From Podarcis erhardii (lineage: Eukaryota): a DNA stretch of 64,000 nucleotides. Under the pieces are notes generated by a model that worked only from the letters and a program-made list of their open reading frames with translations, ran no database searches and was not told where the DNA came from. Made by a program: the position numbers and the translations under genes. The stretch lies in the NCBI GenBank assembly GCA_964252035.1, contig OZ176203.1; one strand, given 5' to 3'. Below are positions 12,337 to 58,411 of this stretch, piece after piece (position 1 is the first letter of the stretch; each line of letters starts with the position of its first letter).

Positions 12337-13489
12337 ATAGCCTCCCCATAGCCTTTGAGCTATTTCATCCAAAGTCCACTTGAATCAACTGACTTTAGAA
12401 CAACTGGTCCCATCTCCAGCATTTTCCCAAAATCTGTTGGACAGTGCAACTGGTTATAGGTGACTCCCAGCACAGGCATAGCCGGGGGCGGGGGGCAGCC
12501 CTCTAATTTGAAATATACTAGCTAGTTAGTTATGATGATTTGAGTAGTGCATGTTAAAGTGTTATCTATCTCAGACTCTCACAAATCAAAACAAATTTTG
12601 AGTGGGATCATTGAAGGACGCTTAAGTCTTAGGTTTGTGAACTGGACACTCAAGGTGGATGTCTCTACCATTAGCTCTATAGGCTTTTAATATGTGTTGT
12701 GGTGCCAAAAAGATATGGTATATTTATATGAAGGAAATGGGTTGTAGGGAGAATCCAGGGCTTGCCTGCAGAGTAGAAGGAAAAGAGGACCTTTTTCTGC
12801 CTCCCCACTTCCAACCAGTCTCTAAAGACTGCAGAAGGGACCCTCTTAAGAATATTAGGGGGGTGGGCAGGGGAAGCATAGCTTTGTTTTTTTAAGTCTT
12901 CAGATGAGGACTAGACCATGTGAAAAATGAATATAAGATTTTAGCAGCAGTTCATTCATTTTCAGCTTTGTATTCTTGTTATAAAAAGTGCGCCTAGACA
13001 TTCTGTTGTTGCGCCCATAACCTAGGTGCCATTTAGCTCCTAGCTTCCGTATCTCAGTTTCTAACGCTGACTGGTCTTTAACTAAAGCCAGGTGGCAGCA
13101 CTGGTGATGACAGTGATGAACAAGAGCAAGTGCCACTTCTGAGGAAAGTTCACCATTGAAAAGCTTTTCCTGGGTTGATGCCATTATGCTATTCCCTCTC
13201 CAAGAACATCCATTAAGGTATGACATAACTGCAAGCTTCTCCAGAGAACCTATTTATTGTGCATTCATGCACAAAAACTATGCAGAGGTTAGCTATATTT
13301 GGTCTTTAATAAGGGTGTTTATATGTCTTCTTGAAGGAATGGGTGTCTGTGCAGTAAGTTTAAAACTGACTCAAACCCCCCCCCCTTTTCTTCTTTCTCC
13401 AAGAGAGTACTCTAAAATGCGTAAAACTTGAGCTGTTGAGCAAAAGCATAACAAGGATACAGCTGCATAAACAAGCTCTCTCCTTTATC

Positions 13490-15657
13490 TTTTATTTTAT
13501 TTTATTTTTTAAAAAATAATATTTATTACTTTTAAAAAGAAAGAAGACAGAAGAGAAAAAAGAAAAGAAAAAAAAGACAATACAATACAATACATGAACA
13601 ATACAAAACACAACCTAAACCCATTAAACTAAACACGTTAAACTAAACTAAACAAAACCCACTCCCTAACCCTAACCCTAAATAAAACAAAACAAAAACA
13701 ATTTAAAAGAAAAAAATACATCCCCCCTTTTCGATACTCTTTCTTTCATTCCCTTGTTTCCTCGACCCACTCTCGCCTCCCTTTTTGTATTCCACTTCTA
13801 CTAGTTATTTCAGCAAATCCTTTCCATCTTTCTCTATTCTCTATCATATTATAAATAACATATTTTTTTAACCTTATTTTAACATTAAAACTAAAATACT
13901 TATATATACTTAACTCCTTATAACATTTCTGCTAAATCCATAAAATATCAATCCACCATTTTTCTATCACTCATTAATTTTGCGATATTTCTATATATAA
14001 ACTTTAAATTTTCCAATCTTCTTCCATCAACTCCTCTCCCTGGTTTCAGATTCTGCCAGTCCTTTCCGTCAATTCCATATAGTCCATCAACCTGGAGATC
14101 TTATGTCCGAGGCTCTTACCTCTTTTCCAGGTCCCTTCTGCAGATCTTCTTCATATTCTTTAATGCTAGAGAGCAAATCTCGAGAAAACTCCATCCTAAC
14201 AATATTTTTATTCCTTCTGAACAGTTCAGCCAAATTTCCATAGTTGAAGCTAGGGTCTATAAAGTGTTTCAGGATGTATTTCAAGATTCCTCCAAATCCA
14301 AAGGCCCCCAAAACTTCAATCTCCTCCAAATCCAAGTCCATGTCCCAAAAGTCAATTAATCCCTGGATAGTGGGATCTTTCCAACTTTCTTTCTTCAGTC
14401 CAAGCCGGGATCCAATCCTCAAAGTCTGACTTTTTCTAGATTCAATCATAAAAGGCCTCAATTTATAGTCCTCAATTTGCTTCTGTAAAACTAAGGATCC
14501 CGCTTGTGTTCTTTTAGGTTCAAAAACAACAACTTTCTCCTTTTCCTCCACCATTTGTTCTGCCAAAGTAGGTTCCTGTGCCAGGTCCTGAATTATTTCT
14601 GTGTTGGTACTCACTTTTTGTCTCAAATTAGTCACTTTCTGTTCCAAATTATCAATTTTAAAAGTCACGTCATCAGTCATGTCATCCATCTTTTTATGAA
14701 GCTCTTCCAGTGAATGGCTTATCTTACATAATGCAGTCACAATAACTTCTCCTATCAACATTTTGAATGGTCCAAGGTCAATCTCTGGTTCTCAGAATCC
14801 TTATCTTGCAGCTAGAGATCTCCCAGTTACACTCCTCTAACAGTTTCAAAAGCTCCCTCTAGAGAGAAACAGTCTCCACTTGTATCAGTTCTTTCAAGCA
14901 CAACTCAAGCAATAAACAGAATTTCGATTTTCAGTTACTTTTCCTCCATTTTAAATGCAGAAGAGGACAATGGAAACAGTATCTTACTCTTATTTTAGCT
15001 GGCTGTCAAATCCATTCTGTCAATGAACTTTCCCCAAACGTCATCTGGCAGCCCATTCCCAGGTTCAGAGCTGTGGTAATTTGATTCTCCCCTCACTCCT
15101 GCAGGCTTACTAAGTTCAAAATTTTCCCCCCCTTCACCTGCTTCCAAGGGGGGTTTTGTATTTTTAACCGATGGAGATTTAATCCTTTGTCAAAAGCTTT
15201 CAAAGACTTTAGCTTGTAACATCTTTGCTTCAGTCTATTTACAAAAGCGGAAGGCGGACTTCCTGTTTATGACCTTCCCGCTTTGGCGCCAAATTAAGGT
15301 ATTTAAAGATACAATTTTCCGTTCTACTCACGGGTAGTTGTTTAAAATCCAATTGTCCACAGGAAAAAGTCAGCGCTCTCCAGCAACAGCAATGCGGCTT
15401 CACTCCGTGAAAGAAGCAGTCGATTCAAAGCACTGCGCCACTCACCCCATGTCGCTCCGGATCCCCAAAACGGTTTCCCCGCGAGTAGGGGAGGCGCAAA
15501 AGGTGCCAGCCAAATCCCAGGTTCACAAGCTTCTCCCGCTTGTGATTTCAATGGGTCTCCGCCTTCGCCGTGGCGGTCAGACCCTGTTTTTCACGGAGTA
15601 AGTTCCTCCCGATTGGAGGAGCTCAGCCATTGCCGGAGGCGCCAACCCGGAAGTCCC
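13490..15657 (-). mobile_element. Non-autonomous L1-derived (HAL1-like) element, copy A, 2168 bp
   Basis: Perfect 18-bp TSD caagctctctcctttatc (13472-13489, 15658-15675); 5' end gacttccgggttggcgcctccggcaatg; single ORF; AATAAA (13522-13527, minus) plus A-rich tail; homologous end to end with 38437-40562. Confidence 0.85.
14087..14761 (-). CDS. 224-aa coiled-coil ORF (ORF1p-like) of HAL1-like copy A
   Basis: ATG-initiated open frame; heptad-like N-terminal half (SLEELHKKMDDMTDDVTFKIDNLEQKVTNLRQKV); clearly homologous to the copy B ORF. The ORF1p assignment is inferred from position and composition. Confidence 0.6.
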   Translation of the reverse strand: MLIGEVIVTALCKISHSLEELHKKMDDMTDDVTFKIDNLEQKVTNLRQKVSTNTEIIQDLAQEPTLAEQMVEEKEKVVVFEPKRTQAGSLVLQKQIEDYKLRPFMIESRKSQTLRIGSRLGLKKESWKDPTIQGLIDFWDMDLDLEEIEVLGAFGFGGILKYILKHFIDPSFNYGNLAELFRRNKNIVRMEFSRDLLSSIKEYEEDLQKGPGKEVRASDIRSPG

Positions 15658-15675
15658 CAAGCTCTCTCCTTTATC

Positions 15676-16166
15676 AGTCACGGCAAGGGATGACCCTGGC
15701 TGTTCTTCTAGGGGAACAGAGAAGATACGTCAGTACCTTATCTTATGTGCTGACCACAAAAGATGCACAGGCCGTTGTCCGTGAAAAACGCCAAAAGCGT
15801 GTTCCCGGAGATGATGACCTCTTCCTCCCAGATAAAAGTAGGAAGAGGAAGATCCTTTTATGGTCAGAAGTACAGGAAGGAACACCCTTTTATGGTTAAG
15901 AATACCAGAGCAAGAACATATGTGATGTCAACCTGCGTACATAGGCTGACGTGGTTGGAAAGAGGGAGAGGGTGCCTGGAGGATATATATACTGCATGAA
16001 ACTTGTCATTTCTTTGGACTTGCTGTGGACTTGATTACGCAAGTGCCTTCTGCTATCCGGAGAGCAGAATAAACTCTTTCTTTGAATCAACCTCGGTGTC
16101 ATTTGACTTCCTTCCTCATGTCCCAGAGCAACGCAGACCCAATCGGTGAACTCCAATAAGGCTACA
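15676..16166 (+). mobile_element. Putative LTR remnant flanking or interrupted by HAL1-like copy A
   Basis: TATATATA (15984-15991), AATAAA (16068-16073), ends ...TACA; a possible left part TGTTGAG at 13434 lies beyond the insertion; no matching TSD found. Confidence 0.45.
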
Positions 16167-16389: not shown

Positions 16390-16695
16390 TACAGCAAACC
16401 TGCAACTTGCGTGCATTTAACTTGTGTGCATTNNNNNNNNNNNNNNNNNNNNNNNNNNNNNNNNNNNNNNNNNNNNNNNNNNNNNNNNNNNNNNNNNNNN
16501 NNNNNNNNNNNNNNNNNNNNNNNNNNNNNNNNNNNNNNNNNNNNNNNNNNNNNNNNNNNNNNNNNNNNTCTGGGGGTAAAGACTTTAGCAATCCCACCTG
16601 CCATTGAATCCAATGTATTTTGACTATACATGATTTTGGCTTTAGGTACAGTCCCTGGAATTTAACCCCTACGTAAGTTGTAGGCTTAGCTTGTG
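16390..16695. mobile_element. Decayed Tigger-like MITE spanning the assembly gap
   Basis: Left end tacagcaaacctgcaacttgcgtgc and right end cgtaagttgtaggcttagcttg resemble imperfect TIRs of a TA-target MITE. Confidence 0.45.
16433..16568. other. Assembly gap (136 N)
   Basis: Run of N. Confidence 1.
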
Positions 16696-20411: not shown

Positions 20412-20487
20412 CAATAGCCTGAGTAAGGATTATCCGATGAGTTAGCTGGCAATAGCCTGAGTAAGGATTATCCGATGAGTTAGCTGG
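20412..20487. repeat. Perfect 38-bp tandem duplication
   Basis: caatagcctgagtaaggattatccgatgagttagctgg x2. Confidence 0.95.
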
Positions 20488-37960: not shown

Positions 37961-38436
37961 TGAGACCAGTCAGATAAGAAGCAAGGGTCAAGGGACTGGT
38001 GGTCAACTGCACTTCTTCAAGCAACTTGTCCACCATCCTCAGACTCCAATAACTGAGACAAATCCAGTACAGATGGAACAGACAGTATTCCGGACACCCC
38101 ACACTGGACTTGCTCTAACTTGTAGCAGCCAACTCTGAGTGATTTTGTCCCTAAAGTGCCTCACCAAATTATCACAGCAGGCCACTTGGAAAAGCTGTGC
38201 TTGACAGCTACTTGCAGACCCAGTGATGGTGGTGGTGAAATAAGTTTTCTCTGCCACCGCTACCACATTCAGACTGAGAATTACACCATCTGCCCACTGT
38301 GTTTCATCGCACACAGGCCACTAGAATACCAGTGTGACCTATGTACTCCACAGCAACAGTGAAGGCATTCAGGAGGTGTTGTGTCAATGGCTCTGAGCAT
38401 TTCCCCTTTCCTCAGTGAGACAAGGCCCTCAATATG

Positions 38437-40562
38437 TTTTTTAAAAAAAAAAAAAATATTTATTGCTTTTAAACTTTACAAACAAGAAGAAAAAGAAAAC
38501 GAGAAAAAAGAAAAGAAAAGAAAGAAAGAAAAAACATTGCAATACAATATATAAACAATACACCACACAACATTAACGCATTAAACTAAACAAAACAGAA
38601 CAAAAACAATTTAAAAACATACATCATACCATTTCAATGCCTTATCTTTCATTCCCTTGTTTCATCGACTTCCTCTCACCTCCCTTTTTGTATTCCACTT
38701 CTATTAATTGTTTCAGCAATTCCTTTCCATCTTTCACTATTTTTTGTCATATAAATATCATAACTTATTTTAACCTTATTTTCCATTAATACTATAATAC
38801 TTATTTATGCTTAACTCCTTATAACACTTCTACTAAAGCCATATAATTTCATTCCAACATTTTTCTAACACTCATTAATTTTACCGTATTTCTATAAATA
38901 AACTTTAAACTTTTTCCAGTCTTCTTCCACCGTCTCTTCTCCCTGGTCTCGGATTCTGCCAGTCATTTCCGTCAATTCCATATAGTCCATCAACCTGGTG
39001 ATCTTCTATCCGAGGCTCTTAACTCTTTTCCAGGTCCCTTCTGCAAGTCTTCTTCGTATACTTTGTCTTCTGCTGATCTTGTTGTTAATTTCCTTCCTTT
39101 GATGCTGAAGAGTAGGTCTCGGGGGGGGCTCCAACCTAGCAATGTTTTTATTCCTTCTTGACATGTCATCCACATCTCCGTGGTTAAAACTAAAATCCAA
39201 AAGATATTTCAGGACGTGTTTCAAAATCCCTCCAAATCTGAAGGTCCCCACAACTCCAATTTCCTCCTGACCCAAGTCCAGATCCCAAAGGTCAGTAAAT
39301 CCCTGCATGAGATGATCTATCCAACTTTCCTTCTCCAGTCCAAGCAGGGTTCCAATCTGACTTTCTCTGAATTCAATCATAGAGGGCAACAACTTGTAGT
39401 CATCAAATTGCCTCTGTAAGGCTGGGGCTCTCTCCCTCTCCATTTGTATTACTTTAGGTTCAACAACCACAACTTTCTCCCTCGCTTTCTCCACCATTTG
39501 GCATGTCAAAGTAGATTCCTGTATCAGTTCCTGAATAGTTTCTGTGTAGATGTTCACTTTTTGTCCCAAATTAGTTGCTTTTTGTCCCAAAATATCAATT
39601 TTAATATTCATCACATCCGTCTTCTTGTGGAGCTGTTCCAATGACTCACTTATCTTGCCTAGTGCAATCACTAAGGCTTCTGTCGACATTCTCAAGCGAT
39701 CCAAGGTCAATCTCACGGTTTTCTCTTGCAGCTGGAGATTCCACCAGCCCAACTCTTATAACAATTTCAAAGGCTCCCTCTAGAGGAAACAATTTCTGTT
39801 TGTATCAATCCTTTTAAGCACAGTTCAAGCAGTAAGATTAGTTTCAATTTTCAACTACTTTTACTCCTTTTTAAGCGCAGAAGGAGACAATGGAAACAAT
39901 GTATTTCTCTTATTTAACTAACTGTCACAGTCAATGAACTTTCCCAAAAACGTCAGTCTTACTAGCAGTCTGTTTCCAGGTTCAGAGCGGTGGTGATCCA
40001 ACTTTCTTCACTCTCTCCTGCAGGCTTACATGATCCAGAAATTCCCCCCTCTTCTCCTGCCTCCAAGGGGGGGTTTAATGATTTTAGCCGATGGAAGTTT
40101 AATCCTTTACATAGGACTTTCCAGGACTTTAGCTTGCAAATTCTTTGCTTCAATCTATTTACAAAAGGGGAAGGCGGACTTCCTGTTTGAAACCTCCCCG
40201 TTTCGGTGCCAAATTAAGATGTTTAAAAATCCAATTTTCCGTTCTACTCACGGGTAGTTGTTTAGAATCAAATTGTCCACAGGAAAAAGTCAGCGCTCTC
40301 CGGCAACAGCAATGCGGCTTCACTCTGTGAAAGAAGCAGTCAATTTGAAGCACCGCGCCGCTCACCCCACATCGCTCCGGATCCCCGAAACCGGGTCTCC
40401 CCGCGAGTAGGGGAGGCGCAAAAGGTGCCGGCCGAATCCCATGTTCACAGGCTTCTCCCGCCTGCGATTTTTAATGGGTCTCTGCCTTCGCCATGGCGGC
40501 CAGACCCTGAATTCCACGGAGCAAATTCCTCCCCATTGCCGGAGGCGCTAACCCGGAAGTCT
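38437..40562 (-). mobile_element. Non-autonomous L1-derived (HAL1-like) element, copy B, 2126 bp
   Basis: 18-bp TSD gacaag(g/a)ccctcaatatg (38419-38436, 40563-40580, 1 mismatch); 5' end gacttccgggttagcgcctccggcaatg; AATAAA (38459-38464, minus) plus A tail; homologous to copy A. Confidence 0.85.
39006..39689 (-). CDS. 227-aa coiled-coil ORF (ORF1p-like) of HAL1-like copy B, with a likely +1 slip near the C-terminus
   Basis: ATG at 39689 aligns with the copy A start. Homology with copy A shifts frame at the G8 run (39121-39128) and resumes as RDLLFSIK...YEEDLQKGPGKELRASDRRSPG in the 38990-39175 frame. Confidence 0.55.
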   Translation of the reverse strand: MSTEALVIALGKISESLEQLHKKTDVMNIKIDILGQKATNLGQKVNIYTETIQELIQESTLTCQMVEKAREKVVVVEPKVIQMERERAPALQRQFDDYKLLPSMIEFRESQIGTLLGLEKESWIDHLMQGFTDLWDLDLGQEEIGVVGTFRFGGILKHVLKYLLDFSFNHGDVDDMSRRNKNIARLEPPPRPTLQHQRKEINNKISRRQSIRRRLAEGTWKRVKSLG

Positions 40563-43500
40563 GACAAGACCCTCAATATGAGCACCAACCATGTCAGTCA
40601 GCAAATTCCCCAGAGCATTCATGAATCCATCAGAGTCTATCAGTTTCTGAGGGCAGAGCATCTCAACGAGTCCCCCACCCCCAAATGGAGTAGCTACATT
40701 CAGCCCAAACCTCACCAATGGACTCGCAGCAAGCCCCAAACACACATGTCAATGGAGTACTACCAATTCCCCCTGTTGCAAAGACCAGGTCTAGGGACTG
40801 CCCTGCCACGTGTGTTGAACCACTGATATACTGAAACAGCCCCATGGTTGCCCATAGAGACCATGAACCACCAAGCTGGCCTGTTTGAGGCAGCCTCAGC
40901 ATGGATATTAAAGTCCTGCAACACCACCAGGAAACGGCTGTCCAACAAAGCATCCAAAATTACCCCTGCATGTTTGGTTAGGGAGGTTGTAGCACAACAG
41001 TGTGAAGGGTACATTAACAATATCCCAATCTGTTCCTCTGGCATTTATCAACAAAAACAGGCCACAGGACAGCTGTCTGGCACCCCCAGATTCTGAAATA
41101 CAGCAGGCAAAGCAGAGGGGGCAAGGGCTTTGATGGAACTAGCCCTTCTCCCTCCCCTCTATACCTTCTCCCTCCTCCATATCACCCTCTACCTACTATC
41201 ATAGGGATGGCAACCTCACTCCCATCCCATCTACCCACCCCCCGATTGACCCAAGACTATACATAATTTCCCTGATCCACTTCTAGTAAATTACAAACAT
41301 ACAGCAGAGGATAGCGTCAGGGGGCATTAGCTAGGCGACACAAAATAAAAATATCAGACGTGACACACCCCAGATTTTGTAAGGTGTTTTACAATGTGCT
41401 TTGGATACAGACATTGAAAACATTTAATCAGGATGTTAGGACAACCTCTAAGAGGGTGTTCCAAGGCTGACATGCATTTAATTCTTTATTAATGCTCTTG
41501 AAAACATGGCAAATCAAGCTATGATCATGTATCAGCAACAGTTTAAATCCATCATTTCTAAATCATGAATAAAGAAGTCATGAAGTTTGCCTTTATTTAA
41601 ATGACTTCCAGAGTTCCTATGACAACCATTGTATAAAGCCTCATGACGGCCATAAATTGAGAAAGAAAAAGTTTGTATTAAAACTTCTGTATTCCTTAAA
41701 GATCTATTATTCATTCCCACTAGATTAGTCACAGTGTGCATTCAAGGTAAGAGTAAAAGAAACAAAAATAAAAAAGCTTGCTTAAGTCACTGAACAGCAC
41801 TTAGAAGAATACTTACATTGACTTTCAAAGTGTTCAAAGGTTTTCAGACAAATGGAACAAAAATACTCTAGTGTGTGCTTTTTCAAAGTAGGTTTTTCCT
41901 ATTTCTTCAGCCTAGAAATTTCCTCCCTGTGATTAATATATTGCCTCCCCTTCTCCCAAGAAAGGTTTTCACCTTTTAAACTATCTACTCCCGCTAAAAT
42001 GTGTGTGTGTATAGCATTGCATCCTGAACAAGCCAGGGCTAATGTTTGCTCATGATAATTATTATTAATGTCCCATTTTGTAATGCTTTCAGAATATTCA
42101 TCATGCACCAGGCCTAACCGAAACAATCAAGTTTGGCCCAAGCAAAATAGTATGAGTTTGATTTCAGTGCTGAAATATAAAACTAGAATCAATTGATGGA
42201 TTTTGGCCTGAGAATGTAGCACTGAATATGTATGCTATTTGCACATAAGCTGGTGCTGGGGTGTTTTAAGTCATACTTTTGAATTAATTCATCAATGCTG
42301 ACAACTGTTCTGGCGTGACTACATGGGTATCACACTCCATATAGAAATGCAAATAAACTGATTAGTCCATGGTAAAGGTTCCCTTTATTTAACAACTAGC
42401 ATTTTCTGGCCTCTGGCTTTAATAGTCTCCAACAAATATAAAAAAATGTTACATGTCTTGAGTGAGTGAGTACCCAGTCTTCATGTGGCAAAGCAGCATG
42501 CCAGGATAATATTTCTCATCTAAGCTCCCTACAGCTTCTCAAGTAAAGGGCGGCTTTTACAAACTAGTCATACTGGCCATTTGAAAATTATCTTGCAGGC
42601 TGAATTTTATCGACACAGCAAAGAATTCCACAATGGCATATATAGCTGAGTGCAACTAAGGCTGTGTACATGCTCCCAATTACTCATCATCCAGGGCATT
42701 CCCACAGCCGATTTGGAAAGTTGTGTACACACAACATTAGCCACCATCCATATCTATCCTGCATCTGCCCTGTTGTTTCTTGTGAAATACTGTGTTTCGA
42801 TGCATTTCCCCACAAACCATCTTTGATCCAAATTGAGAAAAGAATGATCTGGCTGTGTTTTAAGCTAGTAATGTGCATATAGCTTAAAAATCTACGCAAC
42901 AGTAAATCCACAGACTGTGACCCTGAAAGGCCCTTTGTGTGACCTTGGCCCCATCAAATTACCCACTGTGTATGGTTGCCATTGTACAGGTAGTGAGTCT
43001 TCTGTATTTTAGTAGGACTCCTGTGGATATAATTGCATTATTGCTCAAAGCAAGCTAGGGGAGAGGAAGATTCAAAAAGTCACTTGGTTTAGAGGAAAAA
43101 TAAAGATCGCTGTAAAGAAGTATCCAACATGATTCACTGCACTCAGGGTTGGAAATATCCAGACTGTGGGCCTAATGAAGCCTCCCCATTTTGCTCAAAA
43201 GACCACTCTGGCCAAGCCATCTGCCCTTCAACTCATGTCATATATAGCATCAGGTGATTGGCAGCATGGCAGATCAGATGTGATTGGGCCAAAGCAGGTT
43301 TGCAGACACCACTGATCAGCTGACACGACTTGCAAAGCACTGTGCTCAAGAGTATATAGTATAGTGACTATACTGTGACTAACACACAGCATTAATATCG
43401 ATAAACATATATCATCATCATCATCATTTGCTTACATTGTATCCCCACTTTCCACCAAATAGCACTCATTACACCTATTGGCAACGATGCAAATAAAATA

Positions 43501-53115: not shown

Positions 53116-53295
53116 CAGTGGCGTAGCGTGGGTTGTCAGCACCCGGGGCAAGGCAAGTAATTTGCGCCCCCTAACCCGTGGATTTGCGCCCCCTAACCCG
53201 TGGATTTGCGCCCCCTAACCCGTGGATTTGCCCTAACCCCAGATGTTGCGCCCGGTGCGGCCGGCCCCCCCTGCACCCCCCACGCTACGCCACTG
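53116..53295. mobile_element. hAT-type MITE (180 bp) with three copies of a 22-bp unit
   Basis: Same TIR, perfect TSD TGTGCGAG, (gcgccccctaacccgtggattt)x3. Confidence 0.92.
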
Positions 53296-57158: not shown

Positions 57159-57920
<762 letters not shown>

Positions 57921-58411
57921 TAGGGTCCTACTCGATTGTCAGCGGAGGCTGTCGTGAGCTCTCGGGGTTGCCTTGCAGAGGCCTGCGTTTAGTTCTCTGC
58001 ACACAGTTAGAAAGATACTCAGAGCTCTATTTGCAACGTTTTGGGTGGCCGCTCTCTGACACCACCAGCTGAATAACTTGTTCGGCCCCACGGAAGCCAA
58101 GGCAGCCGCGGATCGCGCCCCTCCCCCCCCCCAATTCTCCCTTGTTCCTATGTTTGTTAGTTGCAGTGAAGTCCTTTGCTTTTGGGAGCGATTTCCGTGA
58201 CTCTTTGTAGGACTACTCTGAAGTTTCAAAAATTGTAGATTGTGGCCCAAGAACCCCAAAGGCCTTTTCTTTAAAATAACTTCAGTGGCCTTTTGCTTAA
58301 CGAAACGAGTTTATCATCGGACTGAGAGTTTTTTTAATACCAGTCGCGGACGCCTGAGTGCAGAAATAAAAGGTATTTGCAGCAATCTGCAACGCGTTTA
58401 GTGCTGGAGTA

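Follow-up and report, generated by a model that had tools for sequence, protein, structure and literature searches.

Two copies of one retroelement family lie in a stretch of 64,000 nt from the wall lizard Podarcis erhardii (contig OZ176203.1 of assembly GCA_964252035.1), which is referred to here in its entirety as the window. Both loci, copy A at 13490-15657 and copy B at 38437-40562, are on the minus strand and are very probably complete target-primed insertions of a non-autonomous half-L1 (HAL1-type) family of Podarcis with a single origin from Podarcis L1. The elements have the anatomy of full insertions and descend from L1, they have lost the reverse transcriptase (RT) and endonuclease that L1 encodes in its second open reading frame (ORF), and they carry one ORF, termed mini-ORF1, whose frame has stayed open. 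Conservation between the copies is a mosaic in which the two ends stand out. A preliminary description of these loci had proposed an L1-derived family with ORF1 only and at least two subfamilies. Our analysis supports this proposal, as two diverged subfamilies are present in the window and further ones occur among the proteins of other assemblies.

Anatomy of the two elements and their insertion sites

The copies share 75.6% DNA identity (blastn) in an alignment that runs end to end, and blastn detected no copies in the window beyond these two. Their parts are listed below with window coordinates; 5' and 3' refer to the sense of the element, TSD denotes a target-site duplication, UTR an untranslated region and K2P a Kimura two-parameter distance.

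Copy A
13490-15657, minus strand: complete half-L1 element of 2168 nt, with a perfect 18-bp TSD and an end-to-end alignment with copy B
15658-15675, no strand: TSD on the 5' side of the element, caagctctctcctttatc, identical at 18/18 positions to its partner at 13472-13489, with no extension possible on either side
13472-13489, no strand: TSD on the 3' side of the element, caagctctctcctttatc, partner of 15658-15675
15233-15657, minus strand: 5' module, formed by the initial, CpG-rich ~425 nt of the leader; GC 52%, observed/expected CpG 0.9 (vs 0.17-0.22 in distal leader and ORF), K2P 0.11 to copy B, fold z -5.1; ACTTCCGG (ETS-like) at nt 4-11
14762-15232, minus strand: distal 5' UTR, ORF absent; K2P 0.27 to copy B
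14087-14761, minus strand: mini-ORF1, intact, 224 aa; coiled coil at residues ~1-65, then remnants of the L1 ORF1p RNA recognition motif (RRM) and C-terminal domain (CTD)
13989-14096, minus strand: remnant of the L1 ORF2 tip, last ~36-44 codons; tblastn with residues 1203-1238 of the ORF2 protein P0051, 58% identity, E 5e-7
13490-13988, minus strand: 3' UTR, poly(A) signal and A-rich tail

Copy B
38437-40562, minus strand: complete half-L1 of 2126 nt that represents a second subfamily and whose ORF is broken; TSD and alignment with copy A
40563-40580, no strand: TSD on the 5' side of the element, 17/18 identical to its partner at 38419-38436
38419-38436, no strand: TSD on the 3' side of the element, partner of 40563-40580
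39690-40562, minus strand: 5' UTR of 873 nt, whose first ~408 nt are the conserved CpG-rich module; ACTTCCGG at nt 3-10; fold z -3.5
38990-39689, minus strand: mini-ORF1, frame broken by a 1-nt slip in the homopolymer run 39121-39128; 12 CTD codons retained that copy A lost
38868-38999, minus strand: remnant of the L1 ORF2 tip, last 44 codons with one internal stop; tblastn with P0051 residues 1203-1246, 77% identity, E 2.6e-15
38437-38867, minus strand: 3' UTR with the poly(A) signal at 38459-38464, then (in sense) a T14 run and an A6 tail

Most of this layout had already been seen in the preliminary description, which reported two elements of ~2.15 kb with 18-bp TSDs, a shared 5' terminus and start-codon context, a 5' UTR of ~880 nt, one ORF of ~225 aa, AATAAA and an A-rich tail, and each of these elements of the description was confirmed at the same positions. 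The 5' UTR of A (896 nt) is slightly longer than that of B (873 nt). In the sense direction both elements have the 5' terminus GACTTCCGGGTT.GCGCCTCCGGCAATG, ahead of which stands GG in copy A and a single A in copy B, and the start-codon context GAGATTGACCTTGGA is identical in the two copies. Some 550-600 nt follow the ORF in each copy; AATAAA stands 27-37 nt before the 3' end, and the element closes with a short A-rich tail. In copy B the homologous frame resumes after the slip and continues to the same ...RSPG end, with the stop codon at 38990-38992. The poly(A) signal is followed, ahead of the A tail, by a run of T (in sense) of 14 nt in B (38443-38456) and of 6 nt in A. Both A tails are very short; that of B has 6 nt, and that of A is an A-rich repeat.

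We propose that the element would be transcribed from its own leader and polyadenylated at AATAAA, and that its RNA would then be reverse-transcribed by target priming at a staggered nick, giving rise to the 18-bp TSDs, through the ORF2p of autonomous Podarcis L1s acting in trans. Mobilization in trans is the presumed route because the copies have TSDs, an A tail and an L1-derived 3' part and have no RT of their own. Two observations count against this scenario. Neither of the two target sites, which in element sense are CT|GATAAA and CT|CATATT (flanks 15676-15683 and 40581-40588, adjoining each 5' TSD), is the mammalian L1 consensus TT|AAAA; with two sites, this could be due to chance or to a looser specificity of lizard L1. 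Among the sequencing runs screened with copy A, moreover, none recorded as RNA holds the element. A fraction of 0.28-0.50 of the words of copy A was present in sequencing runs of seven coded organisms, and thus near-identical sequence exists beyond one sample, either as the same locus or as other copies. Searching the window against Rfam gave no match.

Mini-ORF1 is a reduced L1 ORF1p

In quick searches mini-ORF1 resembles an orphan. A word-based protein search found no match, phmmer against the PDB yielded nothing useful, a search of the ESM Atlas gave no match at >=0.9, and comparison with Pfam returned weak coiled-coil noise alone, with Transposase_22 unmatched; the related short proteins described below have no Pfam match either. 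Pfam alone is insensitive here because full-length Podarcis ORF1p sequences also fail to match the Transposase_22 model. In an annotation, mini-ORF1 would for want of a Pfam match be labelled an orphan gene.

An exhaustive search with a hidden Markov model (HMM), using the alignment of A and B as query, recovered 13 relatives, and every named one among them is from a Podarcis wall lizard, a narrower range than the squamate family put forward in the preliminary description. These relatives comprise long forms of 340-362 aa (e.g. the cluster of A0A670HWD5_PODMU, referred to as the P0008 cluster) and short forms of 201-215 aa, together with fragments, from Logan contigs; the UniRef name of one relative, P0023, is 'L1 transposable element RRM domain-containing'. 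When 14 long forms were combined in a profile, it matched mouse L1 ORF1 (2ldy, E 7.8e-5) and human LINE-1 ORF1p (2ykp, E 1.3e-4) across the RRM and CTD. The profile comparison with L1 ORF1p that had been suggested for this ORF likewise gave a clear result, with the short-form profile aligning to the Podarcis long forms at a probability of 99.4% and an E of 4e-21 (hhalign), interrupted by gaps of 40 columns in the RRM and 17 columns in the CTD. On the strength of these alignments, mini-ORF1 is a shortened, atypical L1 ORF1p and not a novel protein.

Mini-ORF1 begins at a methionine that is internal in the long form, near its residue 52, and is without the ~51 residues that precede it there. The coiled coil is retained, as are the initial portion of the RRM and the middle of the CTD. 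The RRM core is without ~40 residues, and a CTD stretch of 17 residues is gone in A, with 12 of the 17 kept in B. Given the RRM, CTD and N-terminal deletions in the alignment, neither copy encodes a complete ORF1p with coiled coil, RRM and CTD intact. Upstream of the start, tblastn found no remnant of the first 51 ORF1 codons, and a short resemblance, QEKT.R, is visible by eye in B. The proteins of A and B share 52% identity by BLASTP, close to the earlier estimate of about half, and 58-62% in MAFFT alignments. A further observation concerns the starts of the short forms: P0001, P0006 and P0011 begin MA..GK, like the original L1 ORF1 start MADGKEK, whereas the copies in the window begin at the internal methionine near residue 52. 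Two or more N-terminal solutions have thus arisen within the short lineage.

Loss of RT and endonuclease in an internal deletion

As tblastn queries we used seven L1 ORF2 proteins of Podarcis, all but one of full length; the full-length P. muralis proteins, including P0051-P0053, are of 1244-1246 aa. No RT or endonuclease was detected in the window elements with these queries, in agreement with the absence noted in the preliminary description, and the sole match was to ORF2 residues ~1203-1246. This tip, the last 44 ORF2 codons, lies directly 3' of mini-ORF1, out of frame with it, and is decayed, with stops present. A 3' UTR had earlier been placed straight after the ORF; the UTR is there, but the stretch immediately following the ORF is the ORF2 tip, which had been overlooked. 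The stop codon of mini-ORF1 is formed inside the tip, an overlap which indicates that a single deletion fused the near-end of ORF1 to ORF2 codon ~1203. Such an internal deletion would have removed the tail of ORF1, the spacer between the ORFs and ~1200 ORF2 codons, including those for endonuclease and RT. Further deletions would have shrunk ORF1 to its coiled coil and fragments of the RRM and CTD.

A single origin followed by repeated transposition

The comparison with L1 was made at the protein level (ORF1p and ORF2p), and the DNA copies compared were A and B within the 64-kb window. Internally deleted L1 copies are common, and the Podarcis gene models P0002, P0013 and P0048 carry other, different L1 deletions. 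The two loci might accordingly be dead autonomous L1 copies that lost their interior by chance, during or after insertion, and not members of a self-propagating lineage. The junctions speak strongly against this explanation. Copies A and B, which are 75.6% identical in DNA and have separate TSDs, have one ORF1/ORF2-tip junction and one RRM deletion in common. With its own 18-bp TSD and A tail at each copy and a common junction, the deleted form has been retrotransposed at least twice.

The same deletions recur outside the window. Other assemblies contribute complete short proteins (P0001, the P0006 cluster and P0011) that are 28-37% identical to A, and the RRM deletion and the end RASD.RSPG (or DPG) are common to A, B and all three. 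The whole 17-residue CTD stretch is absent in A, P0001, P0006 and P0011, and 12 of its residues are left in B. Two fragments extend the pattern, one (P0009, 51% identical) with the RRM deletion and a similar end and the other (P0003, 34%) with the RRM deletion alone. A maximum-likelihood tree of 26 ORF1 sequences separates the six short forms from the others at a branch supported at 100/99. Because the deleted columns hold no short-form residues, the shared deletions count as evidence in addition to the tree. Common deletions and one clade together imply that the deletion derivative arose once and was then copied and diversified as a non-autonomous element, with the deleted form itself having been copied many times over a long period. 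The explanation by chance deletion is largely refuted by these comparisons of sequence, and we consider it very improbable; a single origin of the deleted family, with repeated transposition in the deleted form, is what the shared junction, deletions and clade show.

This origin appears to lie within the L1s of the host. The nearest long form in the tree is P0002, an L1 ORF1 of P. raffonei, and the mini-ORF1s join directly to Podarcis L1 ORF1 proteins in this tree, which was built without mammalian HAL1 or L1 sequences. The direct link to Podarcis ORF1, combined with an ORF2 tip up to 77% identical to P. muralis ORF2p, points to an origin inside lacertid L1.

An open frame around a retained coiled coil

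The frame of mini-ORF1 has clearly been kept open. No stop was present in the observed sequences, whereas at least one stop arose in 99.9% of 2000 neutral simulations in which the 137 observed substitutions were placed at random with the observed spectrum. The clear indels in the ORF are of 12, 3, 9, 9 and 36 nt, the exceptions being the 1-nt slip and a 2-nt gap placed by the aligner at the start codon; this bears out the earlier remark that internal indels are in frame apart from one homopolymer slip in B. Multiples of three make up 5 of the 7 indels inside the ORF vs 1 of the 20 outside it (Fisher P 0.0014). At the level of residues, the GY94 likelihood estimate of omega between A and B is 0.62 (likelihood-ratio P 0.035), and divergence of the ORF keeps pace with that of the distal 5' UTR (K2P 0.27 for each). 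The amino-acid sequence is thus barely constrained. The preliminary description had held the protein to be under selection, a claim which stands for the open frame, as judged by stops and indels, but not for the residues, where constraint is slight and the NG86 omega is not below its null. Our proposal is that selection may hold the frame open while the residues drift fast.

The part of the protein best retained in structural terms is the coiled coil. An unbroken heptad pattern extends over residues 1-63, with 72% LIVM at a/d positions, a value matched by 1/1000 shuffles. AlphaFold, supplied with an alignment of 26 sequences, predicted one long helix with a pLDDT of 88-96 over residues 1-60 (with an alignment of two sequences the pLDDT was 41). 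The heptad pattern and the motifs W, G.F.F, NYG and RASD.RSPG are kept across short forms that are only 28-37% identical. In a complex model containing two copies of the nearest L1 ORF1p coil (P0002 residues 52-150) and residues 1-90 of mini-ORF1p, the chains formed a parallel three-helix bundle in homologous register, scoring 0.73 vs 0.06 for the best control; the mark set for this score was reached by 51/78 solved complexes and by 2/108 mismatched pairs. The heterotrimer runs agreed in at least 78% of contacts, and the partner pLDDT was at least 74. This model expresses a likeness to the ORF1p trimer and is compatible with co-trimerization, but is not a demonstration of binding. Distinct L1 ORF1p coiled coils form heterotrimers on co-expression (PMC10588031).

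Judging from these models, mini-ORF1p most likely still trimerizes through its coiled coil, alone or mixed with L1 ORF1p. Trimerization would bring the RNA of the parasite into or near L1 ribonucleoprotein particles and so help it to reach ORF2p. Several results argue against such a working protein. By NG86, omega is 0.40 and not different from its neutral null (0.53 +/- 0.11, P 0.09); this estimate is not taken as evidence for selection, because the null itself is 0.53 under the observed transition bias. Differences per codon position are nearly equal (46/40/51). Past residue 73, in the C-terminal two thirds, pLDDT is below 50, so that the structural modelling envisaged in the preliminary description succeeded for the N-terminal helix and failed for the remainder. 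RNA binding may be lost, since half of the RRM is deleted. Finally, the score of the complex may merely reflect likeness to the solved L1 ORF1p trimer.

Two variants of a trimerizing protein deserve mention. Mini-ORF1p might act mainly against L1, joining ORF1p trimers through its coil and poisoning them as a dominant negative, thereby damping the helper. The retained coil, its homologous register with the L1 ORF1p coil in the modelled 2:1 bundle and the heterotrimerization of distinct, co-expressed ORF1p coils would allow this, and fast evolution of the coil fits a conflict. Against it, the model may have passed owing to its likeness to the solved trimer, a poisoned helper would also harm the parasite, and the deeper short forms have a coil that bears very little likeness to those of current L1s; we regard this role as quite unlikely. 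Alternatively, mini-ORF1p without a working RRM could persist as a fast-evolving coil that co-trimerizes with active L1 ORF1p and carries its own RNA, bound in cis on leaving the ribosome, into L1 particles and thereby to ORF2p. This is a speculative reading to which we give a low probability. If true, the coil of the parasite would chase that of its helper over evolutionary time, a protein-level mimicry not described for any non-autonomous retroelement.

Conserved ends of the element

Divergence between A and B differs by region, with K2P values of 0.11 for the first 425 nt of the leader, 0.27 for the distal leader, 0.27 for mini-ORF1, 0.11 for the ORF2 tip and 0.19 for the 3' UTR. The two end modules are therefore the parts of the element under most constraint, or else those exchanged most recently. 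The preliminary description had identified the ORF as the maintained feature; its frame is indeed open, but the best conserved parts are these end modules and not the protein.

The 5' module (first ~425-450 nt) has a GC content of 52% and a ratio of observed to expected CpG of 0.9. The ratio is 0.17-0.35 across the distal leader and the ORF and, on very few C and G, again near 0.9 in the AT-rich 3' part. An ETS-type site, ACTTCCGG, is located at the first bases of both copies, and a second GGAAGT occurs at about nt 390 in A and nt 375 in B. RNA of the module folds more stably than shuffled sequences (the z values given above for each copy), with a long-range helix, alike in both copies, between nt ~10-30 at the 5' terminus and nt ~255-280. 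Covariation is uninformative here because two sequences give one compensatory pair alone. The 5' module is presumably an L1-type internal promoter and leader. The structured, CpG-rich 425 nt and the ORF2 tip are candidate cis signals for reptile L1.

These patterns raise the alternative that the element spreads through its cis ends alone (5' module, ORF2 tip with 3' UTR, and A tail) and that the protein is functionless, the frame being open for a reason other than the protein, e.g. because translation protects the RNA or holds it on ribosomes for capture of nascent ORF2p. Conservation of the end modules exceeds that of the ORF 2.5-fold, divergence of the ORF equals that of the distal leader, the codon positions are hit almost equally, omega is near the neutral null, and the C-terminal two thirds are modelled with low confidence. 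However, the likelihood estimate of omega is below 1 (0.62, P 0.035), and the heptad pattern and the four motifs listed above persist across strongly diverged short forms. A functionless protein is possible but doubtful in our view, and the reading that we retain for the family is one in which mini-ORF1p most likely still trimerizes through its coiled coil.

Comparison with known elements

HAL1 elements have been described in mammals, where they have several independent origins (PMC5753468, PMC4161310, PMC8535693); the mammalian elements were reported by Smit 1999 and by Bao & Jurka 2010, as cited in PMC5753468 and PMC4161310. A literature search for HAL1 in Anolis, lizards and squamates returned nothing relevant, the HAL1 reports that were covered being confined to mammals, and in a review of vertebrate L1 evolution a term search for non-autonomous derivatives gave no match. 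Like mammalian HAL1, the Podarcis family is a non-autonomous L1 derivative that has kept the 5' end of L1 and ORF1 and lost ORF2, carries TSDs and an A tail of its own and presumably relies on L1 ORF2p, and like the mammalian families it appears to have originated independently within the L1 diversity of its host. Unlike them, it resides in a lacertid lizard, its ORF1 is incomplete (missing ~51 residues at the N terminus, roughly half the RRM and some of the CTD), it has a recognizable ORF2 tip of 44 codons, and its protein evolves almost neutrally in an open frame. As judged from sequence comparison, then, the family has the features of a HAL1 except a complete ORF1, and is probably of independent lacertid origin.

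Relative to autonomous Podarcis L1, the family shares ORF1 homology (E 4e-21), the last 44 ORF2 codons at up to 77% identity and a coil in the same register, but autonomous elements are of several kb with an ORF1 of ~360 aa, whereas the half-L1 copies are of 2.1-2.2 kb without endonuclease or RT and with an ORF1 of 224 aa. The protein descends from vertebrate L1 ORF1p of type II (2ykp, 2ldy; Transposase_22), with which it shares a trimer-type heptad coil; it differs from this type in the deletions that break up its RRM and CTD, in having neither a Pfam nor a direct PDB match, and in the lack of a confidently predicted fold past the helix. L1TD1 (PMC4161310) is also derived from ORF1 with its coiled coil retained, and an interaction of L1TD1 with L1 ORF1p has been proposed. 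In contrast to L1TD1, a domesticated single-copy host gene, the half-L1 is multi-copy, TSD-flanked and mobile.

Mammalian HAL1 elements keep ORF1; the lizard lineage went further in dropping half of the RNA-binding domain, and yet its frame stayed open through a divergence of ~0.27 substitutions per site. The family may therefore provide a natural dissection of which parts of ORF1p an L1 parasite needs, be it the coiled coil, translation itself, or neither.

Other observations

Two P. muralis gene models outside the window, P0007 (XP_028576234.1, 'TRIM39-like', 422 aa) and P0030 (A0A670HR98_PODMU, 454 aa), have a TRIM RING and B-box joined to the coil end, RRM and CTD of L1 ORF1p. The ORF1p part sits where TRIM proteins usually carry PRY-SPRY. 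These models are either annotation chimeras or represent a TRIMCyp-like fusion that could target L1 particles.

Within the window, an exon on the plus strand at 57276-57923, coding from ~57420, has a Pfam match to bHLH_HIF1A (E 2e-17) and lies in a CpG-rich region at 48-60 kb. We take this exon to resemble the first coding exon of a single-minded (SIM1/SIM2) gene. Both half-L1 copies are situated 17-44 kb upstream of it. Runs of N occupy 2240-2614 (375 bases) and 16433-16568 (136 bases), and perfect short tandem arrays occur at 53160-53231 (22 nt x 3.3, in the CpG-rich region) and at 20412-20487 (38 nt x 2).

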